Below, piece after piece: positions 3,263-61,648 of a DNA stretch of 64,000 nucleotides. The stretch's first letter is position 1. Every line of letters starts with the position of its first letter. Location of the stretch: contig JBLDXI010000009.1 in assembly GCA_047495785.1 (NCBI GenBank), forward strand, positions 3,410,001 through 3,474,000. Direction: 5' to 3'. Below the pieces are notes generated by a model. It saw nothing but the letters and a program-made list of their open reading frames with translations, was not told the origin of the DNA and did no database searches. Made by a program: the position numbers and the translations under genes. The stretch comes from Lepidodermella squamata. Lineage: Eukaryota > Animalia > Gastrotricha.

Positions 3263-6200
3263 GGCGTGCGGTCCAGGCGCAGGTAGTAGCGAGAAAATCG
3301 TTTGATTACGTCTACTGGGCACATGTTGTAGTAAGTACCTTACTAATAAAGCCGGCCCCGAGACATGCCGCAATGTGAGCAATGAAACTTGAATATTAGG
3401 GACGCTTCTTACGGGTGGAAATGAAATGCAAAGCGCCCGAGGCAAACTGGGACTTTAAATTTGCGACATAGAAATTATAAAAACAAAGATTGACCCATCT
3501 GAGCGAAAATTGATAGCTTTAAGGCTGAAATAGGCATTTTCTTATAACGTGAAGAAAATTCTGCGATATTCAACTTATTAATACGCAGTTTGAAAATCAT
3601 ATTTTATTGCTCATACAAATCAAATGGATATTTTTTAAACCATCAAATAAATTAAATGAATATCAGATGAGCAAAAATGGGAAGAATGGAACAAAAATAA
3701 CAGTAAAAATAGTGAAAAATATCGAAGGCCGCTCGATGGCCGCTTTCGATGAGTCTTTCGATTGAGCGATGCGATTGTCATCAAAGTAGCCAGAATAATA
3801 CGCATCTCGCCAATACGTAGTCGGCGTGTATCGAAAAGTGACTTGTAGATCGAGAAAGCTCAGTTTAGGTCCGACCAGCTCAATGTCCAACCGAATGCTC
3901 GAACCATTTATTCCAATTTGTGAATTCACTAGGACTAGAGATTGATTTTGCAACAGCGGCCAATTGCGGTAGAAAATAAACTGGCTATCGTCACTCGTGA
4001 CAGCAATTTGAGGATTGCACACCTCCGAGTTGGCGCCACATCTCCACACCTGACGACCAACTTTCGATAGGAAACACTCCAGCGTCAATTTTCGTCGATT
4101 TTCAACTTTTTGATAAAAATACGAAAACATTATTGTGTACCTCGGCGGATATACGGCAACAAAATCCGACTCTGTATAGTAGAGATTGCAAGGAGGTGGT
4201 GAGAAAACTTTCAAAATATTCAGCTGGCGCGGCCCGTAAGTGTAGACACCCTGATGTTTCGACAGATCGATTTCGCCCAAATTAATGTTCAAATTCGACG
4301 AAACTAGTCTGAATTCATCGGGCACATTATTGTAGGACGTATATTGAGAAAATTGCCAGGTCCATTCAGGATTTTTCCCGAGCTCGTCAGCAGGCTCCAT
4401 CGTATAGAAATAGCCGTCTTCCTTTTCCACATGGCTCAATATGATAATCGGGAAATTTGTTTTCGGCATTTCTATAGCTTGAATGTTGGATTTTCGAAAA
4501 TGATACGCAAAATATGGGTGGTCATCACAGTTTCGCTTGACGTCTTTTTCAGTACAACCACACTGAGTTGAATTTTCGAAAAATTCACAGTTCAACGTCA
4601 AATTTACAGGTGTTTGCCAAAAATTGAAGCCGATACAATGTTTCGAAATATCACATTCATTTTTGCAAAATTCGACGCTATTCATGACTTGAATCGATTT
4701 GTAAGCGCTGCATCGATTGCAACGGCCAATAAATCTCCTATAACGACCGCCGAATGTGTCGTCCCACCAATTTTTGCAGGACGGAACGTCGCAAAAGTCC
4801 TTCACTAAATGCGAAAAACCAGGTCGTTGAACGAAGCAAAACGGCCGGTTCACTTTGAAATCGGGCAGAACCCGGCAGTAATTTTTTGCCGATATTGGAG
4901 GCCGGTTTCTGGTTGGATATAGTGAATATTCATGATCTCGCCAATTTTCACATGGCAGATTGTAACATGCCGATTGTTTGACATAACCGGCGTATTTTTC
5001 GCTGCTTTCTGGACGGAAACAGTTGATGGCAAGATCGCGACGAAATTTCGACGGAGCCACCTTAACTTCAATACTGAACTGAATTTTCTGCTGAATAACA
5101 AACGCGTCGCCAATAGAAATTTTCAAAATATAGAGCCCGGCTAGTGAACGGCGCAAGTTCTGAAGGTCGTTGAAATCCGCGAAATAAGGTTCGAATTTCA
5201 TGATGACTTCAAACATCCTTTCATGGGCTCTTTTCGCGGTGAACTGAATAGGCAATTTCGAGTCACCCTTCGTTTCAAATGTAACATTGGACTCGCGCCT
5301 TTTCTCGGCATCTGAAGCCTGGGAAATTGCTGTGATAACGGTCGGATAGCAGGCGATTGAACGCTCCAATGAACATGGAACAGCATTTTCAGGAATAAGT
5401 TCAATTTTGAAGTTGATCGACAGAATGGATCCAGGCTCGATTCGAAGCTCGAAATGAAAATCTTTCGCTGAAGACGGTCTGATGTTAACAGGTTGAGCCT
5501 CAGCTGCATATTCCAACCATACGGAAGCATCAAATAGGTGTTCGGCTTCGAATGGAGGCAATTCGAGTTGTTCAATCGCAAAATCAGTCGAGTTTCTTAA
5601 ACTTGAGCTAACAGGAGGTGGGATGAAGTTCAATTGAAAGTTGTAGTCACCCTGGCTGTTAGCTGGGATAACAACGGTTGCTGATAGAATTTTCGAGCTA
5701 TTTCGATAGGTTGCATTTGAAGGAAACGATGCTAGGCCGCCCTTAGAATTTCTCACAGAAATGACTGGATTGCAAACGTTAGATCCGCAAAATTCGATTT
5801 TTCTCGTTCCAACGTAGCACGCCCAGGTGAGGTAAATCAGGCGTAATCCCGGGCTAACGGTGAATTTGATCTCGTAAATTCTTTCCTCCTGTTTCATGAA
5901 TGTGTTGTTGAGAAATATTCGGCATAGCAGCCGCTCGTGTACAGTGACTTGGTGGTACTCGGAAGATCCATTGAATAAGCATCGGTACAGACCGGTATCA
6001 GGTTTGAGTAAAACGTTGGTTTTCCTCTGACGGAGGCCGAATTCTGGTTTCTCGGCGAAATTCAGGTAAGCACCTCGCTGCGCGGCCACGCTCAATCCCC
6101 ATCGACCGTCAGCCAAGACTAACATGAAAATATAAAATTCGAGTCAATTGAATTTTCAAATTTCAGAATTTTAAGATCAGAAGTTATAATTTTTTATAAT

Positions 6201-8043
6201 GTTACCCATTTCTGCCCGATTCGGAAAACAAATTGGCCATAATACTGAAAAGCGGTACAATTTTGTACACTTGCTTCCACGCAAACTAACAAATCGCGCT
6301 TGCGAATGGAAAATGCGATTTTAGTCCGGTTTTTGACGTATTTCGATCAGGGCCGTGCCAACGATCATCCCCGTATTTTTTATTAATTTTTATTCGCAAG
6401 CGTTAGCTGTTTGGAAGGGGTACCCCAAAAGAACAATTTTGGACAGTAAGCAATTAGCAATAAAATTGATAATAAAAAATCCACCTTAATATTGGCGTAA
6501 CTATTTTTGAATCAAAAAATGCATTTCGTTCGTTGCGGATTTATTTCATTCCGAATTTGTTCAAATACGCTATCTCTGCCATGGTTCGGAAACAGAAGAA
6601 AAAGGTTAGGCAATACACTGATGAAGAGATGATCGATGCGATTACCTTGGTCAAATCGGGTGCACATCCTTTACGCGAAGTTTACAAAGAAAGGGTCGAA
6701 AAATGGGGCATCTCATTGGGAACGTTCAACAACCGAGTCCTCCAGCGGCACAGCGGTTCCATTGGCCACCCGACCGTCTTATCTCCCGAAGAAGAAGAAA
6801 ACCTCGCTCGACTCGTTAGGGCCACTCAAGATTGGGCCATTCCGCTAACAAAGGAAGAGATAATGGAAATCGGGTCTAAAATTGCTTCTATCGAGTTGGC
6901 GGATGACTGGTTTACTGCCTTTATCCTTATCCCTTAAATCAGGTCTGAAATTGCTTTTTAGCCATGTTCTTTGTCTTCATCTCAAAGCTACAAAACAAGC
7001 ATTTCAGCCCTTATGAGCTCAATCTGATCAAAGTCGCTCTTCAAGTGATTTCAAGAGCGCGAAAATGTGACGCATCGGCTCAAAACGAGAAGGTATTTGA
7101 TTACTACTGACATTGTGCTTCGATTCTTACCCTTTTGGGGACAAACATGCAAAATTTAGTTTTTCTGTCTTTCATATAAACATTTGTTTGCAAGTTACAG
7201 GCGCCATTCATGTTCACAGGCCCAGCAGAAATTAAGCGGACAAATTTAGGTTTAGTCTCAGCCTAGCCTAAGTTTGCAGCGTTTAGGCTGTTATAGATCT
7301 CCTCAATAATTGAGGGCAAGGTGATCTTGAGGAAAACGTATGCGGAACAAAAGTTGGATGAGAAGAAGGTGGCTGCAATCTTTAGTAAGTTTCAAGTTCC
7401 TAGAAGTTCAACAGAGTAATTTTTCTTTAGAGTTTGCCTCTCATAAAACTGCCCTTACAAAAAAGACACGATCGAAAACCAACGAATTCGAAAGCGCATA
7501 TCAAAACAGTGCTCCGAAAAATACCATGAGCTGAATAAATGAGGCTCTTCGTAGTAAGCGAATGACTCAAACCATTGCTGCTACGACTTACTGCGTAAGC
7601 AATGCACGACATCACGCGGGATTAATCATCCACCGATGCCTGCGGAACCTCGATTCATACAGTCATTCGTACAAGAAAAGTGTTTCTGTATTCTGAGTAA
7701 ATCCGAGATTGCTTTTCTCCCTAACCGGAACCACCCAGGGACCCCGTTCCGGGAGCATATAGGGTAAATTTCAGATAAAATTGATAGAAAATACAATATC
7801 TACCTTAAAAATCTGCGAATTTTGAATTTTTTCTTTTTTCACTTTTTCACTCATTTTGTTTTGCGCGAATTTAAAGGAATTTAAGAAATCCTTAACGGTG
7901 TTGAGGGCAGAAACGAGATTCGGCTGAAATGTCGTTTGGATGATCCGATCGCAGTCGAGGATGGATCAAGATTCTGCTTTGTGACGATATTCAGAAAATT
8001 TACCGCTATGCGACCACCCGGCTAGAACGAACCAGATAAGCCG

Positions 8044-9491
8044 ATGTTTCTGACGCCAATTGCCCATCCGAAACCTGGAGCAGCAGTTTGGTACAGGCGA
8101 CAGGCGCTTGGTGAAATCCCCCTTGGTGAGATTGTGAAAAGAGCGGCGGAGAAAGCTGGAATCAAGGGGAAAAAGCTGACGAATCATTCACTGCGTAAGT
8201 TTTGCGCGGCAGCTTTGAAAGACGTTTTATCAGACCGGGAAGTGATGAAAATTACTGGACACAAGAACTTGGCAAGCCTCAATGCCCACGACCGACTGTC
8301 AACGAAGCGAAAAATTGAAAATTCGGAGATCTTCTCGAAGAAGGCCGGTGGAGAGAAGGCAGGAACATCTGGCCAGCCTGATATCCCGGATCTGGCTTCC
8401 AATGAGAAGAAGTTGAAAATTGTGCACGATGACAACTTAAATCTTCCTCCTGCTGAACCTGCTCAATTAACCCTTTCACGGCGGGAAGGACGATTTCGGA
8501 ATTTCGACTTTGAATATTCACAGAAACTTGAATTCGATGAATTTTTGATCGCCCTTTTCAGGAATATTGCTTTTCGATGTTGGCTACAAGATTTTGAGAC
8601 CAGGGCGCCGTTATCTTGCATGGTCAGGACATACAAGCAATTTGAAAATAGTCAACCTGAGATTGAAATTTCGATTTTTTTCAACTTGAAATCTCATAGG
8701 TTTCTGATCATCTTTTGATCCAACAAAAAATACCACCGTGTCCGCCATAGTCTCATTGACCTCTGTGTAAATTATTTCGAGTTGGAAATTAAAAATGACG
8801 ACGCTATTGAGATTTAATCAAACCGGCCGAAATCGTCCTATCCGCCAGGACTCATACAGGCGGAGTGCGTGGTTTTTGTGCTGCAAAAACTGTCGCGAGC
8901 AAAAACTGGAAAAGCTGAATTCAGATCTGAATGCTGAGCCTCTGAAACTTTTTAAAACTGAATGTTTTCGGCGATTTAAGTTAGGGAGAATCTTAGGGAC
9001 ATTCATGGGAGTAATTTATAATCTAAAATTCCAAAGCTGGAGGCACCTGACACAGAAATTAGGGTGTTCGAAAAATCTGCTGAAATCAGCTGGGCGGATA
9101 GGACGATTTCGGCCAGTTTTTATACAGCATTAACGGTGATAGATAGAGATAAACGGGTTTCAAAATCGCGATCAGGGCCCTCTAAAACCCCTAGAACTGC
9201 CGTCAAATATTTTTTTTCCCGCAGATAAATAATTCCGCCATGAAAGGGTTAACAAGTATCGTTACCTACAGCCAGCTGGTCCCAGGTGATCCTCAGTACC
9301 AATGGCCAGAGATCCAGGTTCCCCCGCAATCAGGCCAAGACCTTGAAAACTTGGGTGGTCTCCTAGTCAGCAGTCAAACCATGCGATTCGGTGTCGGAAT
9401 GCGTAGCCAAAGCACTGCACATTTTCGTATGCCGCTCAGCTTCGCGTCCGGCGGTACCTTCAACAACTGCACTTTCCATATTGGCAATTGA
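8044..9491 (+). mobile_element. Crypton-type tyrosine recombinase remnant, split by a piggyBac MITE
   Basis: FLTP...WYRRQALG...AGIKGKKLTNHSLRK...ITGHKNLASLNAH. Removing 8471-9248 and one TTAA joins it in frame to a C-terminus ending GTFNNCTFHIGN. The expected catalytic Tyr position is His. Confidence 0.8.
8471..9248. mobile_element. piggyBac-type MITE, 778 bp
   Basis: TTAA TSD at 8467-8470 and 9249-9252; TIRs CCCTTTCACGGCGG / CCGCCATGAAAGGG; internal 27-bp inverted repeat at 8820-8846 and 9093-9119. Confidence 0.9.
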
Positions 9492-9746
9492 CGGAAAGTC
9501 TTCTTGTGACCTCAGTCAACTTTTGTTCAAGACATTTTTCATTGTTTGTTGTTAATCTGGTGCAATTAATTAATGAGCTTAAATAAAAGTGCCAAAACTC
9601 ATAAACTTAGCTGCTTTAATTTGCCACGGTTGTTGCGAGATGGTTTGCGAGAATAAAAAGCAATAAACCTGCGAGCATTATAATCCCAAAATTTTAAGCG
9701 CGAGTTAGTTCGAAAATAAAACACCCACCTTAATTTTGATATTTGA

Positions 9747-9781
9747 AGTGTTTCTGTATTGTACAGGAATACAGAAACACT
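9747..9781. repeat. loxP/FRT-like palindrome (14-bp arms, 7-bp spacer)
   Basis: AGTGTTTCTGTATT-GTACAGG-AATACAGAAACACT; the same arm recurs at 7679-7692 on the other side of the recombinase ORF. Confidence 0.75.
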
Positions 9782-11199
9782 ATTTCTGTATCGCTTTTAA
9801 ACGCCAATCATCGGAGAATACCCTATCCGAATTTTGCGGGCTCGGCTACAATTTTTTGTATGTTTGATCACTAAGCGACGCCAATCAAGGGAGGAGCCGA
9901 AAATCCATCTGACGATAATATCTACTTCTATGTCCCATGGTTTCGTTATGACATCGAAGATTCTGACTGGAACTACCTTTTTCCCGCAATCAGCCTACTT
10001 ACTTGTTTTACTTACTTCTTTTTTGGACACAGGCTGAACGCTCAAGTAAACCCGGCGAGAGGGCCGGTTACAGTGTGCTGGCTGCATGTAGCGATGTTTA
10101 TGGTATATCAATTCGGGTCATCCAGGCAGATTTCGTCGATGGCCATGTCTTTGAGCCCGAAGCTCATTCAATTAAGCCCCGGACCTGACGCTAGCGTATG
10201 TCAACAGAAACCATTACTGGGCGCTTAAGAAGAAAGCAGCCGAAAAACCCTCGATTTCGCTGTCCTCAATCGGTCCGATGTCAACTGCGGCTAAGAAGAC
10301 GCGACTCTCATAAATTGAAAGAAATGTCCACGTTTTTGTGTTCTTAATAAATATTCAGTTGATACAATCCGATAAAGACGAGAGAAAAAGTTACTTTTTC
10401 AATAATCATGCAACATTCAATCTTTTGTTATTACCATCTTTGTTACTAATCGGCTTAGAAGGGATGTTTAACGATACGATTTGGATAACACTTGCTAATT
10501 CACTCTAAAAATCCACATCGATAACATTCGATAACATTCTTAATCGCATAATGATTCATGATTCAAACCTCAAAATTTGTACACTGATGCGAAAACCGTT
10601 AAAAAATGCGAAACTAAAATTATACTTCAACGCAACTAACCTGAAAACTTTTCGATTTCAAACTTTTCCCAGCGAACTTGTGGCAAGTAAAAATCGGAGA
10701 CGTATTCAGCGATTTTGCAAGCAATTGTCACATCTCTAACTCCTTCTTCAAATTCATGAACCGTGAACGACTCGCCCGGTGAATCTTTATTTGTCTCAAC
10801 GTCAGGGACAGCTTTTTTGCGATAGTACCATGTCTTCAACTGACTGGAACAGAAGCCCACATCGTAACAGGAACACTTCTTCAAGTAGCACCTGACGACA
10901 CCCGGCTTCGAAAAATCGGCATTAAATCCTGCGCAATCGCTGTTTAAATCGCAAAAATCAGCACACCTTGAGGACAAATTCGCAAGATTATTAATGACAA
11001 TTTAAGAACGCATAATCACAGTAGCTTACACTTGAACGGATGGTACATGTGAAGAGTTGAGATGCTTGATATAATACCTGGCTTTCTTAGTGCCATTCAA
11101 GCACTTCTCACGGACGTGTTCCTGAGCATAGCAATTTGTGAACTCGATCAACGGCCTATCCTCTTCCACTAAATGCGTACAGGCGCAGTGGGCGTATAA

Positions 11200-12147
11200 A
11201 GGTGGATTCACTAATGTGCGACAGGTACGACAAGTGTCGTACTGTCGCATGCGACTGTCGCAGCTCTGTCGCATCAAATCCGCGGACGACAGCCGAGGGA
11301 TAGTCACAGTCGTATGCGCACAAAACAATGACACGCGCGGGCGCTGAGACAGTGTCGCGCGCGGCTGATTTTTATATGAAAGGAAACCAAATTTGCAAAA
11401 AATTTGTCCAACTAAGTTTTTAACCAGAAAAATCGTTATTTTCGACATCAGTTACTCTATTTCCGCGTATTTTCATCGAAATTTGATAATTTTAATTATT
11501 TTCACCTAGCACGGCACCACCTCGCGGATTATTGAGGGCGCTAACAACTTTTTTATTTAAATTTTATTAAGGAAGAAATTCGTAGTCATTTGATAGAGAA
11601 TTGTTTTAGTTTTAATTTGGTATAAAAGCCGCCGTTGTTTTCGAAATTAGCTTTTTGACATTTTAGTGCGCGCGGCCACCGTTTTGTTAAAAATTTTGAT
11701 GTGGTGTTTCGCGCCTTAGAGTAATAGTGCGTTTGTCTATTCCTCCAGGTTTCGCGCAGAAGTCCACTGTTATACTTCGATTGCGCGCTTGAAGTGGACC
11801 GAACTAGGACGTTGTTTTACCTGCTGTCGGACGATTCTAAGCTGTCGTGTCGCACACGCGAAATTCCACCAAAATCGCGCGTGCGATGCGACAGGCCAGG
11901 TCCATGCGACAAAATCCTTTGTTTGAGTGCGCGCGCCCTAGTCGAATCTTGTCGCACGCGCACATTGTTCTCTGACTAGCATTTATGAACACTCGGCGCG
12001 ACTGTCGTACGAAACGCTGATGCGACGGTACGACGCGCGACAACGTCGGATAGTATATGAACAACGATGCGATTTTCGCACCCGACAGTGCGACGGTCGT
12101 ATGCGAAATATTCGTATCCGAAAATTCGCACATTAGTGAATCCACCT
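11200..12147. mobile_element. PIF/Harbinger-type non-autonomous element, 948 bp, inserted in G6 exon 6
   Basis: 22-bp perfect TIR AGGTGGATTCACTAATGTGCGA; 3-bp TAA TSD at 11197-11199 and 12148-12150; many subterminal TGTCGCA/TGCGACA motifs. Confidence 0.92.
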
Positions 12148-15100
12148 TAAAACGTCGTATCGCTTCAACACCGACTCGTGCTCTAGAAAATTCAGTGAAG
12201 TGATCAAAATTCGGAGCGAAAAATCTTCTTTACCATCGTCACACATTGGAACGTGGCAATAGCCCCAGTCAGTTGTCTTCGCCTCGCCAGCTATTGGGCA
12301 GTATAGCTTCGGCGAACCGCCTGAGTTTCTACATTTATTCAACGCAAATGATCCAGATCGATCGAAAACAGAATCTGGAAATGTAGACTCACTGTGAAAT
12401 AAAAAAAAATTTTTAAGACGGATTTTTTAATTTTAGACCGAGTTCAATTTACGAAAAGCCGCCATCTGGAACATAATTGCTAGCGTTCCATGGCAAGCAC
12501 GGCTCGCCGCACACAGTGGTGGCCAAAGATCCGGTATATTCAAAGCCTCGGCTGGTCCTTTGGCAGGTGGTCTCGAAAGCTAGATGAAAGATGAAATATG
12601 AAAATAATGAAATTTTTGCTATTTATCATCAACTTCAGCTTACAATTCGAACGAGGCGGTTTCATGATTATTGTCAGATAGGGTATTTCATCGGGATGGC
12701 GTTGCAGCCTATCTTCAGAGCTGTCGAATTTTACAATGTATCGCTTTGACATGTCGTTAGCCATCTCCAAGGAATTGAATTTGTACACATTCGCTGCGTA
12801 ATTGGTCGAATTTTGGAAAAACGACAGTGTCACGTTGACAGAATTGAGCTCAGTCGAGACAAAAACATGCAACGCGCTCGAAATAGCTGGATTCGTGCCA
12901 TTTTCAGAGTCGAAAATCACCATGTCACCCTCCGATTTTCCAGCTAATTCCACGGTTGTTATCGAAATTTTCGGATTACAAATCGAAATTTCATCATCGC
13001 AAATCGAAATCGGGCCGTGAAGTGTGCAAATAAATGTCACATTGAGTTGAGATGGACCGGCAAAGGTCAGGGTGACATTGGTGCCCACTGCAAAGACGGC
13101 TCTTTCGCCAATCGAGATTTTACATTTGTCCGATGCCACTGCGCGTTCTATAATTAGCCGGTTGTAGCCAGCCGAGTCATTTTCAACATGGAAGTAGTCG
13201 AATTTTGCAAGGAAAAAATCTGATTTTAATTGCATGAGATGATCAGATTGATAAAGGGCCGCCAGGGTGTATTTATTTGTCGGCCTCGGCCATAATTTTG
13301 TTCGGAAACCAATGACAGGTAGAGATTTCAGGGGAAGGTAAACGCTTGACGCGTTTGATTTTAAAGGCATGGCCGACAAAATCTCTCGCTCATTTTCGAA
13401 AAGCTTGAAAATCGGGTATAAAAGAGGTCCTTTTCCTCCAGAAACAACGGCATTTTGGCCGTAGCACCGTAAAGAAAGATCAACGCCGCCGTCAATTTTG
13501 GTTTCGAACGAAAAATACGCCCCATAATTCGACAGTTGATACAGCCTGGAGGTGATGGAATGATTCAAATTCAGGCTATTCATCGATATATCGCAAAAAT
13601 TGGCGGTGTTGAGAAGATTCAAAGAGTGGTATTCGACTTTCTTGGATTTGACATCAACGCATCGATATAAACCTGAATCGGTTGAATTCAGGGCGAAGAA
13701 TCGCAGTTCAAAACGATCGCTCGCTATCACCTCATTTGTATGATCCATAAAAGCTGTCATTTCCACGGATTTATTTTCTAGATAACCGATGTCCCCTATA
13801 AAGATATTGCACTACTCAAGCTTTGAACAGCAAATAATGAGCACTTACACTTTGACCACAATTTCCCATCGATCATTTTTTCCCAATAAATATTTTCAAA
13901 TTCGTCTTTCACAAAAAATCCACAAGTCACAACGAGATTACGTTGATCCAGCGCATAGCGGTGCTCGTAAACAGGGATCCGACCTTTGGAATCACCTGAA
14001 AATTCTGAAATAATTACACTAGGCATTTCGAAGTTCAATCAAACTTGTCTGACTCTGAACTGCAACATCTGCCACAACCGTGTCACGGTAGAGCTGGTTC
14101 AGAGATTCGTTCCGATATCGCAAGATGACTCGATAGATCCCTTCAAGCTTGAAATTGGCTTTGATGAGCGTCTCCATATCAGAAGTTTCACTCAAAATCG
14201 GGAGAGTGAATTTGAAAAATTTCATATCTTCATTTTCAAACTTAGCAGTAACGCCGGCCTTTGCGAGATTGAACACATCTTTCGCAATGATTTTGAAAAC
14301 CTCGGATTCTGAAGAGACTCCGCGACCTTCAAAAATGACCTGTCCATCTTTTATCAGAACGATTTCAGGGTCACAGATTGACTTTTGGTCATCATCGCAA
14401 GGCAAGAAGTCTTCCTTATGAGCACTTGGAATTCGGCAGTTCAAGGTAAGGTTGAATTCAGGCGCTAATTCCGGCAGATTAACCACGATTTTCTTCGCAT
14501 CAATAGGATTGCTATTGATTGCTAACGAGCAACTAACATCAAGAGTTCGATTGAAACGATAGTAAGGCGGGCCTGATTTTTTCGGGCAAATGTCGTCTCG
14601 GTATCGAAGTGATGCACCAACTGGCCGGCAAAAAATGCCGCACTGCTCGTATTTTCGAAATTCAGGACCGAATAGAAAATAAGGCAGACATTCATCGGAT
14701 TCGCAAAACTTATGACCCTCTTCAATCACATTGTCCCAATTTTGGCCAGACCAATTACCAGCAGTTCCATAATATACCTCATAGATAAGTTGTGGGCCAA
14801 TCGTTAGAACTTTCGACCCATCAGAATTTATGTAATAATTCTTCAAGGTATAGTCAGTCGGGCTGTAGTAGTCATTGCTGTGAACATAAACAGGTAAAAC
14901 CGAGCCTGGACAAGCTGTTTTGATTCCAATATCCGGAAAACTTCTGAAGAAATTTCTGAAGCTCATGATACCTTCCGGTAAAGCACTTCGACGAGGTATA
15001 AACTGTAGAATCGATTCATTTAAAGGAATTTTCCACCTTAATCTAACCGTTGCTTTCGTAATTTCCACGAGATTTTCTTCCCAACAGCTCTGATAGTCGA

Positions 15101-15464
15101 TTCCATTTTCGTCAAACATCCAAATTGGCAATTCGACAATCAAAAATCCATCGGCTATGTTGAAAGATATTTCAGGCATTTCGGGGTACACAGATGTTGC
15201 ATTTCGTCGCGTTCTGCCACCTCCAATGTCAAAGCCCAGATTCGGCGGTTTCCCTTCAAAATTTATTGCCGTAAAACTGGGCGGAAGATCGTCAAAACAC
15301 GTTTCTTTCTTGACGCGAATCGACGCAAAATCACCTGATTCTCGGTCCCTTTTAGGGACCAGCATGTCGAAATCGACGATTCCGAAGCCATATTTTGAGT
15401 CATAGCACTTCGAAAGAGCTGGCAACAAAATTCCGATCACGATAGTTACACGAAATCGGCTCAT

Positions 15465-15488
15465 TTAAAGCCTAAAATAAGAAATAAT
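15465..15488 (-). promoter_or_regulatory. 24-bp G5/G6 spacer with overlapping poly(A) signal and splice acceptor
   Basis: Minus strand: CAA TAA ATTATTTCTTATTTTAG|GCTTTAA ATG. AATAAA overlaps the G5 stop; the AG is 7 nt before the G6 ATG, with an in-frame TAA between them. Confidence 0.7.
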
Positions 15489-21400: not shown

Positions 21401-22387
21401 TATTCCTCAATGTCGTACGCGGCACCGCCAGTAGTCGTGTACAAGTGGGCCAACAGTGATACGCTACCGTTGGAATGGACACAAGGAGGCGATGATAGCT
21501 ACGCTTACACCTCTTCGCTAACTGGTTGGGTGAATTCAGAAGTGTTTTTCAACCAATGTCGAGACATCTGGTTTCCTTGGGCTAAGTCGACATCGGACCC
21601 CAATTACCCTGCAAGTTCTCTTTTGAGTTAAACTGTTTTGTTTGTAAATAATAATCATTTAAGGTATACATTCTTTGGGACATTCTTTGGCCACGGCCCG
21701 CATCTATCTTACGAGGGATGCAAACTGGCTATTGACGAAGGGGTTGAGCTGATCAGGTTTCCACCAGGGATGACCGATTCGCTTCAAATGATGGATCTAT
21801 CGTGCTTTGGTCCAGCTAAAGAAGGTTGGAGTGAAGTTATGCGCCGAAATCGATTCAAAGGCTTGACTGATTTGCGAAACTTTCCTAGTTTCCTCAAGCA
21901 GTTGATCACAACTCCCTTGAAAAGTGGGCTGGCCCCATTTTGTGCCAGGTAACATCATCGCAGGATTTCGACCTGGCGGTCTGGAGCTTGTCAACGGAAA
22001 GAAACGAGAAAGAAAGCGAACGTCACTCCCAAATTTCAAAAATATATCGATGCGGCGTATGTCATTGAAGATGTGCAATCTGACGGGAACTGCTTGTTCC
22101 GCGCCCTTAGTCTCCTGCTTCTGGGAACTCAAACTCAACATTCCGTTGTTCGAGCAGCGGCAGTTTTGAAGTACATCAAGGAGAGCGAAGATGTGTTCTT
22201 ACCGTTCAACGACGAAGAAGGCGACATTTTCGTGGAGGGTTTCGTCACCGAAGTGGAGCTACTGGCCAAAGCGGGTGAATGGGCCGGCAACAGCGCCCTC
22301 GTTGCTTGTTGTGAGGCCTATGATGTGAAAATCAGGGTATTGCAACCAGACACCTACCAGCCTGGGCATATCTTCGAGCCATCTGAT

Positions 22388-50300: not shown

Positions 50301-53067
50301 ACGGATTGGCAGCGTCAATCGACCGGAATTTTCGCACATATTCAGCGTAATGAGGTTGCAATTGAAAAAACGCCAACGTCATATTGACCATGTTCATTTC
50401 AATCGTGGGCTTCACACTCATGCTAACAATAAAACCAACATCTTTGGCTGAGGTTGAGTAGAATTCTTCATCCAAGTCGGTGTCCGAGCCGGAATAAATA
50501 TTATACGAATAAAGCTTGATTTTAGGATCGCAGAGTGTCTCATTATCTTCGCATAATGTCATCAGAGCGTGACGATTTAGGTTACAAACAAAGGTGGCAT
50601 TGATTTGAGTTGGGCCTTCAAATCTCAAGGTAACATTTTGACCCTCGTCGAAAGCACCATATTGACCAATCACGATCCTGCATTTGTCATAAACTGGAGC
50701 TATATCGACTGAGACATCGTAATATCCATCTTCATCTTGAAAAATCGTAAACACATCGAACTTGTTTGAGAAAAAATTAGCAGGTAGTTGCTGCAAAGGT
50801 GAAGCCAATCTAGCCAGGGTATAACGCTTAGCTTCAGAGACCGCATTAACTGTTAAAGTTAATTTAACCCCAGCAGTAGTGCTAGTATCCAGCGAATAAT
50901 AGGGGGTTGTTTGAAACAAGAGAGATTTGCAGGAAGTATAAACCTCAGCTTGATTTTCGAACAATTTAAAATTCGGTCGACATAGCGCAGGTTTATCAGC
51001 AGGAATCGCTAGGCTTTGATTGTAGCACCGCATTGAAAGGGTGATTTCATCGTCATAAGGCGGCTGAATGATGATAGTAGCGCCGTAGGAACTCAGTTGA
51101 AAAATTCGATCGCCGATAGATTCCGTCAGAGGCCCGCCATAAATCGTGAGATCGCAGATTTTTTCAGATATTTCAAATTTAATCGAATGATATTCAACAC
51201 ATTTTATGGCATCCTGGATATTGATGCAGCGATAGAGGCCAGAATCCATCGATGTAAAATTTTCCAAGCGTAAGATGAAGCGATCGCCTTTTAACGTTTC
51301 AGTCGCATGGTCGAGAAATGACTTCATTTCAGGTGAACGATCGGCTTCATTGATTGAATCGATGTCCCCTTTGAATATAAAAATTAAGGATTTTTTATCC
51401 TAATTTGATAAAATCACTTACATTTTGAATAAAATTTATCGCCAATCCGCTTTTCCCAATAGACATCCCGGTATTGATCGGCATCGAAAAATTCGCAATT
51501 CAGATCTACAAATCGATCTTCCATCATAAAACGCCGTTCAACAAACGATACTCGTTCATTTACAGCCGCGTCTAGAAATAGACTTTAAGAGGAATTCGGA
51601 AAACACAAAAGGAACGGTACCTGAGTTGTCATTCACGGCGATTTCACCTAAAAGATTACTGCGGCTCAGACCAAACAACTTCTCTTTAACGAACTGAAGA
51701 ACCACTTTGTAGACGCCATCCAATTTGAAATCACTCGAAACATGAGCAGAAATATCAGAATTTCGACCAAAAATTGGAAAACTAAGCGCGAAAAACTGAT
51801 AATCATCACTCGATTGGACAGATGCCCACTTGGCTTTAGCGCCAGTATCAGCAAGTTTCAGCTCATCCTCGATAATATTCATAAATGTTGAAGATCTGGC
51901 CGAGATTCCGTAAGCTTCAAATATACGCCGTTCATCTTTCAGCAGCAAAATCTTCGGATCACAAAATGCCCTGGAATTATTAGGGCACAAAATCATTTCG
52001 CGGATTTGGCCGTAAGGAACTCGGCATTGCATGGTCAGATCGAACTGCTCGACAAGAACCGGAAATTTAACCGATATATTCTTGGCCCCAGGTATCTCAA
52101 ATCCGTTGATATAAATCGTGCAGTCGATATCGAAAGATCTCTTGAAGTCGTAATCCGGATGACTTCGAACTGGGCAGAAAATCTCCAAATGGCGTAGGGT
52201 TGCATTTTCCGGCCGGCAAAATATGCCGCATTGTTCATATTTCCGAAATTGAGGTCCGTAAAAGAAATACGGCAAACATTGGTCAGATTCACAAAACGTA
52301 TGGCCATCAGCAACCATAGCCTGCCACGATTTCCCAGCCCATTGCCAGGCGTTGTCAGAAAAAGGCTCATAAACGAGCTTGAACTCGACCAGACCACCTT
52401 TTGAACCATCTGGATTCAAATAGTAGTTCTTCAAAGTATAATCGGTGTTTAAAAAATAATCTTGACTATGAATTGGGAAGCTGTCAATTGAACCAGGGCA
52501 AGCGGCTGAAATGCTGTAATTGAAACGGCCCCATTCTCGAAAGAAAGCCGTGATATTCAGTGGTCTCATTTGCAAGAATTCACGCATTAGGGCCAGTCTT
52601 AAATGCGGCCCTTTGAACGTTGAATTCCATCGTAATTTCACGCTAGTTTTCGATATATCCACGGCATTTGAGCAGCTTCGAAAGTCGATTCCTAATTGAG
52701 CAAACATCCAAATGGGGAATATCACTTCGAAAGTTTGATTAGCCATGTTGAAACTGATATCAGGAGTTTCGGGAAATACTGAGGTAGAATTCACCCGAGT
52801 TCTTGAACCTCCGATGTCGAAGCTAATAAACCACGGCCTTCCACTTGACGGATTGAATGCTGTGAAACTCGGCTCATGCATCGCCCAGCGTTGGATGAAG
52901 CAAGACTCCTGCTTAACACGAATAGAGGCGAAACCGCCAGGTTCCCGATCTTTAGCCGGAACTAACATGTCGAAATCCACAATTCCAAAACCATCATCGG
53001 GATCATAGCTCAGCACCATGAGCATCAATGAAGCGTGAAAGATACATTTTAGCAAAAGATTCCTCAT
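44314..53067 (-). CDS. Array gene G2: intact Ig/kringle/PAN GPI-anchored protein, ~2013 aa
   Basis: Exons 53067-51621, 51571-51422, 51368-50193, 47916-47790, 47729-47578, 47415-47247, 47189-46861, 46805-44314 (6042 nt). Same motifs and intron phases (1,1,1,2,1,2,1) as the paralogs. Confidence 0.88.
48970..49035 (-). mobile_element. tRNA-derived SINE head in G2 intron 3
   Basis: Minus strand GGGAGCAC-TAGCCTAGTGG...GGTTCAACGCCC (A and B boxes); no complete cloverleaf. Confidence 0.55.
49499..49675 (+). mobile_element. Crypton-type tyrosine recombinase C-terminal remnant in G2 intron 3
   Basis: HSARK...YNGGCDEKLIRQMTGHKSAALHQY contains the H-x-x-R, GH and Y motifs. Confidence 0.65.
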
Positions 53068-53121
53068 TTTTACGCAAAAGCACCTAAAATTGAGGCAAAC
53101 AGTATCGAGGTTTCAAGTCAA

Positions 53122-56100
53122 TTAAATATCAAATAAAATAATCAGCAGCGAAATTCCGCCAATAAACACAACAACGAGATTAGAGCCACATTTAAGCAAA
53201 GAAATAGCCGAGGAGAACTTGGAATATGCGATTGATTTGTCGATTTCTTCTTGTATTGAGTTCAAATTATGAGTTATGGGTGTGTAGACGAAATGAATCG
53301 CGAATTTCGAAAGCGATGCATCAGGTGAATTCCGCTCAATTTTCATGTGAAGATGCGAAAAATTCGACTGAAGATTGAGGAATGAGACAGAAAGAGGAGC
53401 AGGCATTGGGGTCATTTCATTAGACGGCCAGCTTCGATAGACGACGATCCCTGAACCAACATTTACTATCGTTATTTTAGGATTGCAGACGCTGAGCTGA
53501 GAGCTACAAAGACCTATTCGCCGCCCAGCCTGCTCTGTCGAGCAAATAATTTCCAAACTAGCTGGATCTTTCTTGAATCCGAAATCGGAAAAGCTGATGA
53601 CGTAACCGGGATCTGCGACAGAAAAATCTTGCTCGCCGAAATAAACGAAGCACATAGGAGGCTTGACAACCTTAAGCACATTTATTTGAGCCGGTTGCTC
53701 AGGCGGACCCAAAACGTAGACACCCTGGTGGTATTCGGCGGAAATTTGTCTCAAATCAAATACAAGGCTGGGTAATAAGAGTTTGCCACCACTACCAGGT
53801 TTAACGGTGACATGACTCGGCAATGTAGAACTGAACGGCTTTGTTAGAGCAGATAAGAAATGCCAAAACCAGGCCTGGCAACAGTTCGCTAAGCTTCCAA
53901 TAAGCTGATCAGGGTGCGTGTAAACAGGATTCAACTCGTAGGATTGATCATCATCAACCTCAACGTAATTAACCAGAACAACCGGTAATCTCTGACTTTT
54001 CTCGTCGATTTTCCAAGCTTGAGGCAGCTTTTTGAAGAAGAATTCGTGGAATAAACCATAATCACACTTGGTCACAACTTCGCTTTCCGAGCAAATGCAA
54101 TCGGCCCGCGAGAAAATCGCGCAATTTAACAGATAGTCATTTCGGCTCTGCCAGAAATTGAAGCTGTCAAACTGCTCGAAACGATCAGTTTCAGAGGCAC
54201 ATTCCGTGAAACTCAAATTCTTGTAAGTGATATAGGGATAGCATTTTAAACACGAACCAAAAAACCTTCGATATCGGCCTGAAAAGGTGCTATCATAAAA
54301 ATTTGAGCAAGACGGTATGTCACACAAGTCTGCTAGCAATTCAATCGAGTTAGGCCGATTTACATAGCAGAAAGGTCCAGATGATAGGATTCCGGGCTTC
54401 GAGCGGCAGTAATTTTTGTCCTTCGAAGAGTCGGAATAATTGGCCCAATTTACACAGGGAAGGTTCAAGCAGCCCGATTTTGCTTCGATTCCTCGATATT
54501 CCGAGCTTTTTGAAGGTTCATTGCAATCGTTGTAGAGGCCTTTTCGATAACGGGACGGTGCAACCTTGACTTCAATACTGACATTTAGAACTTGTTGAAA
54601 AATCACAGGGTCGCCGATTTTTATTTCGATGACATAGAGCCCAGCAACAAAACGACGGCAATTGTCCAAGTTAAGGTACGGCATGTGGGATGTGAATTCA
54701 ACCACAGCCCAGATTTCCTTCTCATCAACAGTCAAGGTCGAAAATTCGATTGGCTGGCGGGGATTGACAGGCAAATTCGAGGGCACTGGAACAAATAGTT
54801 CTTGATTTTTATGCATTGAAGTATGCCATACAATGCTGATTAAGGCTTGATAGCAAGGCTTTGCCTCGAAATTGTTTTTCGAAGTACAAAGAATCGCGAA
54901 TTCCGGAATAAGCTGAATTTTTACCAAGACTTTAATGTTTGCACCGGGTTCGATTCGAATTTCCAGGTGTTGATTTAGTCGCGAGGACGAGCTCAACTCA
55001 ATTCGTGACCCGTCGAAAGGTTCCAAAACAATAGAAGCATTGAAGAGATGATCGAGACCAAGTGGGGCTAGATTAATAGCCCCGATTTCAAATAGCATAG
55101 GCGGCCTGAGCATGACACTTGGAACAGAGTGAGGGAATAATCGAAATCCTAATTCATATGTCTTGCCCAGGGAATTTTCAGGTATTATGCCAGTTACGGT
55201 TGCAGTATTTTCGTCGATCAAGGTAACAGTAGCATTGAGTCGTTCAATCAATTTGCTCCCATAGGCAGGAACATGAGTGAAAATTTCGACTGGATTGCAG
55301 AGTTTCGCGTCGCAGAACTCGAATTTCCTCCCTTGAAAATTGCACACCACAGAGGCAGTGATAGATTTTGAATAATTGGCCACTTTCAAATACAAAACCG
55401 AGTTATCCTCCAAATTTCTGAGAAAATTCCCGTTGAGGAGAGCCCGGCAGATCGGCCTTCTGTTAACCGAAATTAGATGGTACTCGAAACTGCCATTGAA
55501 GAAGCATCCATAGAGGCCGGAATCTCCAGTTCGTAACACATTTGGCCGGCCAAAATTGAGGTGGACCCCTGTTTTTGTTGTAGCGCTGAAGTCGTACCGA
55601 TCCCTCAGCAGAGCTATTTAAAAATCAAAAAATAAGGCGAATAAGCACATTTAACTCAAAGCCGTTTACGCTGGAAAGCTCCGATTTCAGGGTGAAAATA
55701 TTCCCACGTGATTTTACGCCCATGCCACTCGGCTGCTAACTCGGCACTTTTGCAACTTATCGTGAAATCTTTCACTCCTTCATCATAAGAATGAGTTGTG
55801 AACGTAGCAGGATCGATATTTTTCTGCCTATGTAGATACGGGAAGATTTGCGGCGATTCGGCTGGCTCGATTGTTTCTTTCTTCCGAAAGTACATTTCTG
55901 TCGATCGACTGTTACAAGTGACATCAGAGCAAATGCACGCCTTCAAAACGCATTTCAGCTTCCTCTTCGAAATATCAACAACAAAACCTTGGCAATCAGG
56001 CGTTATATCGCAAATGGCAATGCATCTTCAGCGAAAAAACAATGAACTAATTGATAATCAAAAACCCGCCCAACTTACTCGGCAATGGAGAAAACAAACA

Positions 56101-59100
56101 TTTCCCGAATTGAATTGAGCATGACTGGCAATACTTTTGAAGGGTACGGCTTACAGCTGTGTTTCATGCCAGTGCAAGTCCAGAAATATTGCCATTCGGT
56201 CATATTAACGCCTCTAATAACAGTCTGCCTAGCCCATGTTCCGTTAAAGTGTTGGCAATCGCAAGATCCGTAGAACCGCTCGTAATTAGTGTTCAGCAAA
56301 GCATCATTTTCTAAGGAAAAATTAGAATAGTAGCCGAAAATCATGAAAAAAATAGTTCAAACCATCGTCGCAAAGTGGAACATGACAATAGCCCCAATTC
56401 CAACCAGTATTGCCGCCGGCCAACGGGCAGTACAGGGCATTCGGCTCTCCAACAGGATTTCGACAATAATTATTCATTTTTGAGCCTTTCGGATCAACGC
56501 GAGCAGAAGGTACCATGGACTCCCTAAAATAAAATAAGAAATAGTTACAAAATGCAACATTTTTTACTTACGAGAGACCGCTTCGAGGTATCAAGAAAGA
56601 ATTTGTCCATTTTTGACAAGGCTCGTCACACACGGTCCTATCCATGGACCCAACATATTCATGGCCAGAAGAAGTTCGCCGACAAGTTGATTCGAAAGCT
56701 AAAAAAATGATAAAAATAAAAAAATGCGGAATATTGAAAGATCTTTCAATTTATTAATGCAATTTTTTCAAAAGCACGTTTTACAGTGCAGATGGAATTT
56801 AGGACAAATTTACGCCCGGGGGATTATCAAACAGAAACAGAGGGTAGAAAACTGAGCAATTCATAAAATTTCTTGAGTTACATTTTTTTATTTCAAGATG
56901 CTTACCGTGATATTGGGGCATAGCCGCTTCGACAAATAAGTAAGGAATCCTATCAGAAATCGACGGCGGCCTATCGAGAAGATCAAACCGCACTGTAAAT
57001 CGCTTCGAAAGCCAGTCGGCAAATATGTGATCCATAAACCACTCAGTATAGCCAAAATACTTAGTTTGATTTTGGAAGAAGGCAAGCGTCACGTTAACAG
57101 TGCTTCGACGCGGGTCAACAGAATGGAAAATTGAAACAGCTTCCCAACGCCATTCAAGCTCTTCAACCGTCCAACCGTTCACTGAATCGTAGATTTTAGG
57201 ACTTTCCGAACCCGATGCAAAGACTTCAACAATAACATTGCATTCTTTTGTTTTCTCATGAACGCAAATCCGGATGGCATTTTCTCGGGGTAAAATGCAT
57301 ACGAAAGTGGCATTAATTTGAAAAGTCGGAGATAGAAACAGCGAAACGTTCATGCCGACAGGATACTCTGCAACATTATTAATAAATAATCGACAGGAGT
57401 CGTTAAGCGAACCGAAGTCGCGGATAGCTGCAAATTTTTTGAAACGAAAAGCGTCGTATGAATTCAGAAAGAAATCTCCGGCTTCTTTGAATCTATTTCC
57501 GAAGTACGCGATGATTGAATAGTAGACGCCGAGCTCAGGTTTGAACGAAATTCTGAAGGCGATAGAACTCTCGGTTAAAGCAATGCGATGCAACCAGTCA
57601 AACATGTAATTATTTGTTGAAAATTTCAATTCATCCTCCTCGAAAACATGGAATATCGGGATGCATACAGCGCTTTCCTCCCCACAAATTGTGATCATAA
57701 GGCCGTGGCAAACCAATGATAAGGTCACATTGGTTTCGTCAAGTGAATAGAAACCAAACCGAGCGCCATTTGACGCTACGCTTGAAACCATAAACTTCCT
57801 CTGGTAATAGGGTGATACGTAAATGTCACAGGAGGTGGACAGATCGATGAATTCAAGAACGTGATATTCCCATTCCTTCGCAATAGAGTTGCCACATCGA
57901 TAAATACCCGAATCAGAAGAGTTCATCCAGTTGAATAGCAAGGCTGTTTGATTGCTGTAAAGTAGTTCCCGCGCATGCTCGACGAAAATTTCCCAGCCAG
58001 GTGGTCGCTTTTCCGGATCGGCGAAAATAATTGCACCTAAAAAATGAATTAAAAATGAAAAATCGAAATTTGAGAATTGCTTGAAATTCGATTCTAGCTA
58101 TCAATTGTCTGTCTGTTGCATAGCATAGCATAGCATTTTCTTTATTTTATCTTTTCCGACGATGGAAACAACCGAAAACTCAGCGGCGAAACGTTTGATG
58201 AGCGGACCCTTGAACACATTGAACATATTGAAACAATGTTGTTTATGAGCCAATGTTAGAAAAATGAATTAAGTTGGAACTAAATCCTAAAAATGCATAG
58301 CCTAATAATTCAGTTACCTGTCGAATAGAATCGATCGCCAAACGCTTTCTCCCAAACTGAGCCGTACGCGTGAGAAAGGGTGCAATTCAGCATGTAACTC
58401 TGCGTAGAAAGCTGGTGCTTCCAGTGATACACAGCAGTTGGATGATAACGATCATCTGCCAAAGTATTTCGATTTTAATTAATAAAAATGCTAATTTCGT
58501 CTGACAAACCTGGATATTTAAAACTACGCAACTCAACGCTAGCAATGAAAACATCGGTGTACTTCTTTCTCAAAGTCGAGTTTTCGAAATAGAAGCTGAT
58601 ATCGTATCGATCATCAACTTTCCAGCTGGGCATCGTATCGTTATAAGTAATCATCGGGAAAATTATCTCAAAGGTCCTGAAATCTTGCTCCGAATTCAAA
58701 TATTCACTGCCCCATTTCGCTTTGTGGCCCGATTTTTTCATATCAAGAGTATCAGTAGTGATGGTCAGCAAAGGCTGAAAACTAACTGATGACATCCCGT
58801 AGCCATAAAAAACTGATTTTTCCAAGCTCGTTATCCAAATTCCAGGATCGCAGAAAGAATTATTGGCGTTTTCACATGGTAAAAAATCTGATAGCTGCGC
58901 TCGATGGATGCGGCATTTCAGCGATATTGTCACTTCTTGAGCGAAACGTGGTGGAAAAATGACGATCTTATTTTTCGGCTCATTCGTATCGCGGATAGGA
59001 TATCCGTTGTAAAGCACAGTGCAGTCAACTTCCAAGGTATCATTCGGCCGCCAATAGCCAGGTTTTGTATGCTTTGGACAAATATCATTTCGATGCCGGC

Positions 59101-59944
59101 TTGTGAGATCAACTGGCCGGCACCAAATCAAACACTGTTCATTCGCCCGAGCATCGCGTCCCACAAAGAAATAGGGGAGACACTCGGTCGATTCGCAGAA
59201 TTTATGGCCCTCCTCAACAATTTCGTCCCAAGTTCTCCCGGACCAGTTTCCAGACTGCATCAAATCAGGTTCATACAGCAACTTATGATTCGCCAAACTT
59301 TTCGAACCATCTCGGTTCAAATAATAATTTTTGATCGTATAATCCGCTTTCGAAAAAAATTCCTGGCCATAAATTCTCATAGGCTGAACACTGGCAGGGC
59401 AGGCCTTGTTGAGATCAAACTCGAAACCTTGATTACCACGGAAGAAATAGTGGAGTTTGGCGAAATTTACAGGTATATTATCTCGTTTAGGAACGAAATA
59501 TAACTTAGAATCGTTCACGTTGATTTTCCAACCCAGTTTCACAGTAAACTTCGTAAATTCCACGCGATCAGCATTTTCGCACTTATTATGATCGATTCCG
59601 ACCAATGCAAACAACCATTTAGGAATCTCAGCCTCCACATAGCCATCAAACACGTTGAAAAGTATTTCAGGAATTTCAGGATGAACAGTGCCATTAAATC
59701 GGGTCGATGAAACGCCAATATCAAAACTGAGCCAGGGAAATTTTCCAGCTTCAGCAACTGCTGTAAAAGCCGCATCGTGAAAATAGACGCAATTTTCCTG
59801 TTTGACTCGAATCGAAGCAAAACCACCCGGCTCACGTTCACTAGGAGGGACTAGCATGTCAAAATCAACAATACCGAACCCTATACGCGGATCATAGCAC
59901 CGACTCTTCGCAACTAAAATTAGAAGCAAGTAAATTATAACCAT
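53122..59944 (-). CDS. Array gene G1: intact Ig/kringle/PAN GPI-anchored protein, ~2023 aa
   Basis: Exons 59944-58510, 58455-58318, 58036-56906, 56698-56572, 56523-56363, 56310-56079, 56025-55670, 55613-53122 (6072 nt). Signal peptide MVIIYLLLILVAKSRC; kringle NYCRNPVGE...WGYCHVPLC. Confidence 0.88.
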
Positions 59945-60047
59945 ATCCTATGATAAAAAAATCCGATTTAATCAATAATTTTAATCAATCAAATCAATCA
60001 AATAAAAAACTTTTAAGCAGTCGATTTTTGAGCAAGCAAAAATTGGA

Positions 60048-61648
60048 TCACAGGAAATAAATAACTGATAGAATAAGAGCAATTGCGTAGAGTGACATGT
60101 AATCGAAGAAGATTTGGCCAGCTTCGGCGGTTTTTGGTCCTTCTTCGACCCTTGAAGGATTCGAGGGCTCGCTCTCATCCGTGTAAGTTGTATCGCCGAA
60201 ACGGGTGCTGGTCGAAGGCGCGAAGTAGAAAACAACTGAAGTCGCAAAGGCATCGCGCGTTGTTTTGAAAGAAATTTCAATAGTTGCCTTATCCTTGTCG
60301 ATTGCCCAAATTGTTTCTTTGCCGATAATTCCTGTAACTGGAGGGTATTCTTTCTCATTGAAACCAAACCGCTTCACCGGCTCGCCGTTGTTGTAGATTT
60401 TGACGTAAGGGGTGCATTGTTGAGGCTCGCTACCCTGGGCGCAATACCCAACGCGGAAGACGCTGCCAAACTCGCAGTTCAGCGTGGTTTTGATTGGGCT
60501 TTCATTGGGTGAGAAATGCTTGCGCAGGAAGTGGTCAAGCCGAATAGCGTAGCCGCTTGATACAATCGATAGCTGGCCAGGAAACCTTTCACCTCCGCCT
60601 TCAGTAGTCAGGGTACATTTCGGGGGAGCTAAAACATGAAAATAATTAAGATGCGAAAGTTCCCAAGTCATACAGGGGCATATTTACTTGAATCTTCTGA
60701 TTTTTATCCCAGGCAACTACTCTATGACTAATTAGTTCTCAGCTTTTTCGTAAATAGCTTGGAAAAAGCGGCACAATTTTTTCATTTATTTCTATACAGC
60801 GCAATGAAATCTGGATCCAAAATGTACTGATCCCTTCTTACCCTTCCTTTGAAAAAATATTTGAGGTTAGGACTTACCAGTTACTCGAACGATATGTGTT
60901 TGTGTTAGCGTGTCGTTATTCGCATAACGGCACGTCGCCTCGAGATCGCTCGTGATCGGCTCCGCAATTTTTAGAAATGAAAACCCACCGACGAGATCGA
61001 TCGTAAATTTGAAGTCCTGCGGAAACTGATCCCAGGTAAGCATTTGATCGCCTTTCATTGGCAAATCGCAGCGTAATGCCAAGTTGGCAGTATTCATATC
61101 AACGTAGTGGTACTGAACTTCGGTTAAGGCTCCGCCCTCGATAGCCTGCTTCAAAAATTCTGTCGATCGGCTCGAATCATCCAAGCGTTCGTAGTAGTGA
61201 TGAAGAGTAACCTGACCTGGACCTTGAAAATAAATGAACAACAACTGTTGATTCCCTCCAACCATGGTTTTGAACAAATTCAAAGGTCAAATTTCAAAAT
61301 CAACAACCGAAGGGATCTTTTTTGACTTGGACATGGAAAAATTGTCATTACCATTAACAGAGCAATCGATATAATCCGAGTCTTCAAAAGTCTGGAAAGC
61401 GTTCTGGCAACGGCAAGATACAAACTCGCATCGCTTTTCCGTTTCATCGAAATTGAAGCCCAGACAAGAAGGCGCCGCATTTTTCAATTCATCACATTTC
61501 GAACGGCAATGCTGTGGAATAGAGATGTTCAAATCTCTCGGTGGCACGTACCATTCTTCCCTGGAACCATGCGGAACCTTGCCAGCAGTTGATCCGCATA
61601 TGCAATGGCCATCACGACGAATGTAATTTCCAACCATAAGCCGCTCGT
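60048..61648 (-). CDS. G0: 3' exons of a divergent relative (PAN, Ig-like, terminal domain, GPI-type tail); 5' exons not found in the window
   Basis: Exons ~61648-61310 (GHCIC...CRSKCDE...CLGFNFD...C, PAN), ~61222-60878 (LRCD...LTW...ATC, Ig-like) and 60628-60048 (APPKC...VGYC...CTP, hydrophobic tail). The junction between the first two exons is uncertain. Confidence 0.7.

Follow-up and report, generated by a model that had tools for sequence, protein, structure and literature searches.

Three groups of described proteins come closest to those discussed here. Plasminogen, HGF and MSP are secreted proteins that combine PAN/apple and kringle modules, ROR1/ROR2 and MuSK bring Ig domains and a kringle together in a surface protein, and contactins and IgLONs (OPCML) are strings of Ig-like domains with a C-terminal hydrophobic signal and no cytoplasmic tail. 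We analysed a window of 64,000 nucleotides from the gastrotrich Lepidodermella squamata (assembly GCA_047495785.1, contig JBLDXI010000009.1, contig stretch 3410001-3474000; coordinates are window positions throughout). Comparison of all its open frames with each other revealed six paralogs arranged head-to-tail on the minus strand between 3663 and 59944. They are best described as a lineage-restricted family of secreted proteins of ~2,000 residues, assembled from known extracellular modules and one domain without relatives, and encoded by old tandem paralogs in an operon-like array. With moderate confidence, we favour a reading in which six old tandem paralogs (four intact, two recently disabled) and a divergent seventh gene encode lineage-restricted secreted glycoproteins of this size, with a putative glycosylphosphatidylinositol (GPI) or membrane tether and probable co-transcription.

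Self-comparison of the minus-strand open frames sorted the coding blocks into eight classes, each with six copies in a constant order. Gene 3 was modelled first from GT-AG sites and the other five copies were then searched at the homologous positions. Each of the six genes has 8 exons separated by GT-AG introns of phases 1,1,1,2,1,2,1, and a GT/AG pair of the same phase was found exactly at the homologous position for 41 of the 42 introns, the sole exception being intron 5 of gene 1, whose acceptor has moved to 11210. Introns are mostly short (48-74 bases in 29 of the 42) and the long ones hold transposon fragments, as does intron 7 of gene 1 (4522 bases). Exons were joined locally, giving open frames for four of the six genes (1, 3, 5, and 6), that of gene 3 running over 6054 bases without a stop; the other two (genes 2 and 4) are broken. 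The models are as follows.

Gene 1 (3663-15464, minus strand): intact, 1988 residues, with splice sites placed by homology and a joined frame that is open; exons 14045-15464, 13849-13995, 12644-13795, 12453-12579, 12234-12391, 11030-11210, 10641-10966, and 3663-6118 (stop included).
Gene 2 (15489-27477, minus strand): 2033 codons with one in-frame TGA, ATG at 27474; exons 26046-27477, 20327-20473, 19117-20274, 18940-19066, 18722-18885, 18464-18668, 18076-18407, and 15489-18025.
Gene 3 (27530-36457, minus strand): intact, 2017 residues; exons 35020-36457, 34816-34959, 33620-34759, 33029-33155, 32811-32974, 32553-32757, 32162-32496, and 27530-30030.
Gene 4 (36553-44269, minus strand): broken, with exons 1-7 open and exon 8 damaged; exons 42853-44269, 42647-42796, 40073-41242, 39834-39948, 39611-39777, 39382-39556, 38962-39308, and 36553-38391.
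Gene 5 (44314-53067, minus strand): intact, 2013 residues; exons 51621-53067, 51422-51571, 50193-51368, 47790-47916, 47578-47729, 47247-47415, 46861-47189, and 44314-46805.
Gene 6 (53122-59944, minus strand): intact, 2016 residues, the most divergent copy, 33-36% identical to the other five; exons 58510-59944, 58318-58455, 56906-58036, 56572-56698, 56363-56523, 56100-56310, 55670-56025, and 53122-55613.

A first-pass annotation of this DNA, made from the letters alone, had proposed six paralogs with 8 exons and common intron phases, and these models bear it out. Two of the six copies, however, turned out to be broken, and within the range that it gave for the family (3663-61648), the stretch from 60048 on belongs to the 3' end of the seventh gene (60048-61673). 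The possibility of one giant read-through gene was rejected, since a signal peptide, a tail, a stop codon and an acceptor are found in every unit.

The order of domains along the protein is largely signal peptide, N domain, beta-sandwich, a unit of Ig, two sandwiches, kringle and PAN that occurs twice, and finally a third Ig domain, a sandwich and a tail. Database and folding queries were made with single exons, the joined proteins being handled in local scripts. The predicted kringles are very divergent, and the Pfam Kringle model (PF00051) had no match on the exons of the six genes even at an E-value of 10. Compared with PDB sequences, the exon 8 profile retrieved for kringle 2 only solved kringles (E 2.3e-8 to 1e-4), those of apolipoprotein(a), plasminogen, prothrombin, ROR1/2, and tPA. 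For kringle 1, the exon 4 profile matched the N-terminal halves of kringles (plasminogen, 5.7e-10) and the exon 5 profile the C-terminal halves (plasminogen, 7.4e-11). This kringle is complete only when exons 4 and 5 are joined, which provides indirect support for splicing. The kringle 2 alignment contains invariant cysteine columns (C387, C392, C417, C430, C445, C450) and the motifs W395 and CR418, with an additional conserved cysteine ahead of the second one. The kringles and the PAN-like module that follows the second of them were placed as follows.

Kringle 1 of gene 3 (32811-33155, minus strand): exon 4 (33029-33155) and exon 5 (32811-32974), with a 54-base phase-2 intron between them.
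Kringle 2 (4776-5060 in gene 1, minus strand): located with the exon 8 profile; equivalents at 16674-16958, 28682-28966, 45466-45750, and 54307-54591.
PAN/apple-like module 2 (4491-4778 in gene 1, minus strand): equivalents at 16392-16676, 28385-28684, 45184-45468, and 54028-54309.

The PAN modules are probable. The first match of a profile built from ten PAN-like segments was the HGF N domain (E 0.0065), followed by kallikrein apple domains, MIC4, and AMA1, and Pfam PAN_1 (PF00024) matched five of the ten segments (best E 7.6e-5). The exon 7 profile matched neither Ig nor PAN domains in PDB, and in the AlphaFold2 model of exon 8 the predicted local distance difference test score (pLDDT) fell below 50 over the PAN part, the kringle-PAN part being of low confidence.

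The same model, computed from a seven-sequence alignment, contains beta-sandwiches at residues 60-355 (pLDDT 80-90) and 560-765 (pLDDT roughly 60-88). Foldseek matched it to tandem Ig proteins, among them titin Z1Z2, CSF-1R, and a single-chain variable fragment, with E-values of ~1e-5. With VIA, residues 556-643 matched I-set Ig domains of DSCAM, IL-1R, FGFR2, and obscurin (Z 7.5-8.2, root-mean-square deviation 2.2-2.9 over 70-83 residues) and residues 198-360 matched V-type Ig domains (Z 7-8), both Z ranges being middling according to the note of the tool. These structural matches, with their middling Z scores, thus indicate that the domain after the second PAN module is an Ig fold and that the domains left as "X" in the first-pass annotation are Ig-like beta-sandwiches. 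Comparison of the exon 8 model by shape with the ESM Atlas gave only meaningless TM values (~0.2), and a search of the same atlas by features with the pair of beta-sandwiches gave nothing usable. The first and second Ig domains straddle exon borders, and their sequence likeness to Ig profiles is confined to the F-strand motif.

Profile comparisons indicate that the five-domain unit is duplicated internally. Exon 3 aligned with the first 305 columns of exon 8 (hhalign probability 96%, E 1.4e-9), exon 5 with kringle 2, and exon 7 with the second PAN module and the start of the third Ig domain. The repeat is visible only with profiles, as blastp comparison of the joined protein of gene 3 with itself found none at an E-value of 0.01. 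The domain order given by the first-pass annotation thus stood for the kringles, the Ig domain after the second PAN module and the internal duplication, with weaker support for the PAN modules.

The cysteine-bearing N-terminal domain of ~290 residues is the best-conserved part of the proteins, with a mean pairwise identity of 52% that rises to 70% around a four-cysteine motif. It had no relatives in PDB, in Pfam, in the ESM Atlas searched by features or in a word-indexed protein search, the last being limited by a length filter.

Apart from an N-terminal signal and a stretch of 15-20 residues at the extreme C terminus, the proteins contain no hydrophobic segment; small residues lie ~10 positions upstream of the C-terminal stretch and at most ~7 residues lie downstream of it. 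Inspection and hydropathy found this pattern of signal peptide and C-terminal hydrophobic stretch in genes 1, 2, 3, and 6, and in weak form in gene 5. The secreted, tail-anchored design proposed by the first-pass annotation is thereby supported, and the tail fits a GPI signal without proving one. Each protein carries 25-29 NxS/T sites and 67-75 cysteines. Enzyme or signalling domains are absent: Pfam searches found no peptidase S1 on any exon, and hydropathy showed no internal membrane segment, so that the earlier claim of no protease, kinase or cytoplasmic domain holds. Searches of the exons with Pfam also found no astacin, CUB, EGF or C-type lectin domain and no ZP, collagen or other polymerising module. 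In the reading that we favour, the tail would direct GPI attachment or at the least tether the protein to the membrane, and the proteins would be long non-signalling rods that serve in binding at the outer surface of the cell or within the apical matrix, the PAN and kringle modules being their ligand-binding parts and the conserved N domain their distal tip.

The same features bear on another explanation, in which the proteins are used to build the apical extracellular matrix or the cuticle and the tail is a transient tether that is cut off, so that the ectodomain assembles outside, as happens in the ZP and PAN matrix proteins of nematodes. Their great length, PAN modules, many disulfides, heavy predicted glycosylation and lack of a cytoplasmic part would all suit such a role; the nematode apical-matrix proteins LET-653 and NOAH-1/2 carry PAN domains, and L. 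squamata itself bears cuticular scales. However, the absence of any ZP, collagen or other polymerising module counts against it, no conserved basic cleavage site was seen before the tail (none was searched for), and the small residues ahead of the hydrophobic stretch suit a GPI site equally well. We consider the matrix explanation rather unlikely.

The comparison with described families can now be completed. The best solved matches of the family profiles were the kringles of plasminogen, HGF, and prothrombin and the N domain of HGF. A kringle spread over two exons is a further feature in common with plasminogen, HGF and MSP. In contrast to that family, the kringle here precedes the PAN module, the pair is repeated with three Ig-like domains between, and a beta-sandwich and a hydrophobic tail take the place of a serine-protease-like domain at the C terminus. 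The alignment also showed that the acidic pair of the kringle NPD-x-D motif, which serves lysine binding, is not conserved. The kringles of ROR proteins were among the best profile matches, but the Frizzled cysteine-rich domain, the transmembrane helix with a kinase, and the cytoplasmic part of ROR1/ROR2 and MuSK have no counterpart here. The Ig domains of contactin, DSCAM, and OPCML were among the fold matches, although the sequence similarity with contactins and IgLONs is confined to the Ig F-strand motif and the gastrotrich proteins differ from them by inserted kringle and PAN modules, the N domain of 290 residues, the lack of fibronectin type III domains and a length about twice as great. 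We found no paper on this domain order. The genes show how a hardly studied phylum assembled a large extracellular family from old modules (kringle, PAN, Ig) reshuffled into an order unseen in well-known families, with an internally duplicated five-domain unit and a conserved N domain without detectable relatives; the family gives no direct answer to any long-standing question.

The paralogs are 33-49% identical to each other, gene 6 being the most distant, followed by gene 5, and genes 1-3 being mutually closest. Silent sites differ by 0.72-0.81, which corresponds to saturation, versus 0.31-0.47 for replacement sites. The duplications are thus ancient, and the copies have evolved under purifying selection; this also applies to genes 2 and 4, which suggests that these two were disabled recently. 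Identity by domain is lowest in the beta-sandwiches (27-37%) and highest in the N domain and kringle 1 (52-55%). Positive selection and selection on individual domains are not measurable at this divergence; the ratio of replacement to silent substitution per domain, advocated in the first-pass annotation, has no meaning here because silent sites are saturated, and overall replacement change is below silent change.

These data bear on the hypothesis that the genes form a recognition repertoire in rapid diversification (for allorecognition, immunity or gamete recognition, or as a variant coat), with paralogs that would be kept because they differ. The tandem arrangement, the two disabled members and the concentration of divergence in the beta-sandwiches speak for it. 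However, all copies are ancient, with silent sites saturated and replacement change well below silent change, neither young copies nor signs of exchange between copies were seen, and another organism has a divergent relative built from the same modules. Old copies kept under purifying selection speak against a coat or recognition system that changes fast, and we regard this hypothesis as very unlikely. The pattern of divergence points to no recent birth and no rapid diversification, so that a young, fast-diversifying repertoire does not fit. Birth-and-death evolution, suggested earlier, draws partial support from the disruption of two of the six copies, but all the duplications are old.

The genes are tightly packed, with only 24-103 bases between a stop codon and the next ATG, and a pyrimidine-AG acceptor lies 0-16 bases upstream of the ATG in all six of them.

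Junction of gene 2 and gene 1 (15465-15488, minus strand): 24 bases; the gene 2 stop lies inside an AATAAA, and a TTTTAG acceptor lies 7 bases before the gene 1 ATG.
Other junctions (minus strand): 27475-27529 (55 bases), 36458-36552 (95), 44270-44313 (44), 53068-53121 (54), and 59945-60047 (103).

Judged by these elements, the junctions look like those of a spliced-leader operon. The genes would be transcribed together, then separated by spliced-leader trans-splicing and polyadenylation; we found no literature on spliced leaders in gastrotrichs. The acceptors could also be used in cis, a single upstream promoter and leader exon being spliced alternatively to one gene each time, which would make the array a choice-of-gene locus. 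The position of the acceptors and the shortness of the junctions, which leaves little room for promoters, are as expected under this scheme, but cis-splicing across as much as 50 kb would be out of the ordinary in a genome where most introns measure 48-74 bases, and we judge it very unlikely. Returning to co-transcription with trans-splicing, its boldest form, in which the six or seven genes make up a single trans-spliced operon of ~57-70 kb that consists only of giant paralogs and yields co-expressed, GPI-anchored kringle-PAN-Ig rods whose N domain is a new gastrotrich-specific binding fold, is a tentative proposal that we consider less likely than not. If true, the operon would greatly exceed typical animal operons in length. 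Should the tight spacing indeed reflect co-transcription with trans-splicing, this array would be well suited as a test case for spiralian operons that consist of very long genes.

Several points weigh against the reading that we favour. Kringle, PAN and Ig domains did not reach Pfam thresholds on single exons of individual members. The assignment of the first two Ig domains relies on Cys/Trp/D-x-G-x-Y-x-C motifs, on weak matches (E 0.02-0.1) and on their likeness to the third, whose start aligns with that of the second, and a profile of the four contiguous Ig regions of the relatives described below retrieved no Ig domain from PDB. The AlphaFold2 model of exon 1, which covers the N domain, had a pLDDT of 48. 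The tail of gene 5 is only weakly hydrophobic, the least of the set, and the canonical AATAAA is missing from most junctions. Splicing, expression and trans-splicing are deduced from the DNA sequence; run X1 is itself DNA, and its contigs cover introns and contain no exon joints.

Relatives of the six genes were found next to the array, at two other loci of the genome and on one metagenome scaffold. The closest in position is the seventh gene, which begins ~9 kb past the window end and has a signal peptide and an N domain of its own, its upstream part lying in the flanking stretch L004.

Seventh gene, last three exons (60048-61673, minus strand): open frames for a PAN-like domain, an Ig-like domain, and a beta-sandwich with hydrophobic tail.
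Seventh gene, putative 5' exons (beyond the window end, minus strand): L004 1772-3607, ~6049-6432, and 7868-9196.

The N-domain profile matched L004 at 2.9e-9, Pfam Kringle matched an exon of L004 with an E-value of 3.6e-4 (21.2 bits, versus a cut-off of 34.3), and the last exon aligned with the profile of the terminal domain (hhalign E 1.7e-4, probability 50%). The seventh gene appears to lack the first Ig-sandwich-sandwich unit. More distant relatives are located on contigs C15 (L001 680-9889, and L002) and C42 (L003 4763-9961). They encode PAN-Ig-sandwich-sandwich-kringle-PAN-Ig-sandwich-tail in a single exon of 970-1005 residues, preceded by different N-terminal exons. Those of C15 are also in tandem, with 117 bases from the end of one gene to the signal-peptide exon of the next.

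A search of 1.84 billion representative proteins with the exon 8 profile yielded 151 proteins at E <= 0.001, all but a few matching in the kringle only. One of them, P0001 (E 4.2e-22), matched in the sandwich domains too, and shares with P0025 a 46-kb metagenome scaffold (ENA ERZ23486787 scaffold_777). This scaffold carries several tandem relatives (L006 1716-12241), among them a PAN-Ig-sandwich-kringle-PAN gene, an N-domain gene and a tail-bearing gene. They adjoin a V-ATPase subunit a gene or fragment that is 72% identical to the copy of the L. squamata genome, and the scaffold thus comes from another animal. A word-indexed protein search with exon 8 itself and the exon 1 profile gave no match, its meaning being limited by the length filter. 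No full-length counterpart was found for the combination that the first-pass annotation had not recognised, the only wider relative among the 1.84 billion proteins being that of the metagenome scaffold.

The lesions of the two broken genes differ in kind. In gene 2, the TGA (26407-26409, exon 1) occupies a variable position directly before a conserved cysteine; either the gene is a recent pseudogene or the TGA is an allele or a sequencing error. A selenocysteine reading of this codon was rejected, since it lies at the variable position and not at the conserved cysteine. In gene 4, exon 8 (36553-38391) has lost ~210 residues equivalent to exon 8 residues 416-627, which removes the C-terminal half of kringle 2, the second PAN module and the start of the third Ig domain, and the frame changes near 37120. 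Between 36598 and 38000, the contigs of run X1 showed no insertion or deletion relative to the assembly.

The X1 contigs also cover gene 3, where they depart from the assembly in dense clusters of substitutions (32498-32545, 32967-33115, and 35657-35735), a 2-base deletion at 32498 and a 1-base insertion at 33009; in two places, both forms occurred in X1 with roughly half the depth. These differences point to two haplotypes or strains at gene 3.

Some long introns contain open frames of their own. Those at 8044-8718 and 30165-30746 (plus strand, introns of genes 1 and 3) match tyrosine recombinases over their catalytic C-terminal part (Pfam Phage_integrase, E 9.8e-7 and 1.8e-3) and are probably what is left of a Crypton- or DIRS-like element. 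Two closely similar plus-strand frames, at 21638-21952 in a gene 2 intron and at L004 6610-7107 in an intron of the seventh gene, have a common motif near MMDLSCFGPAK and no Pfam match; they look like copies of one transposon family. Two ordinary genes adjoin the array in the window.

CCT/TCP-1 chaperonin subunit (14-1491, plus strand): Pfam E 4e-69.
Ciliary microtubule inner protein 2B-like gene (2177-3097, minus strand): E 1e-18.

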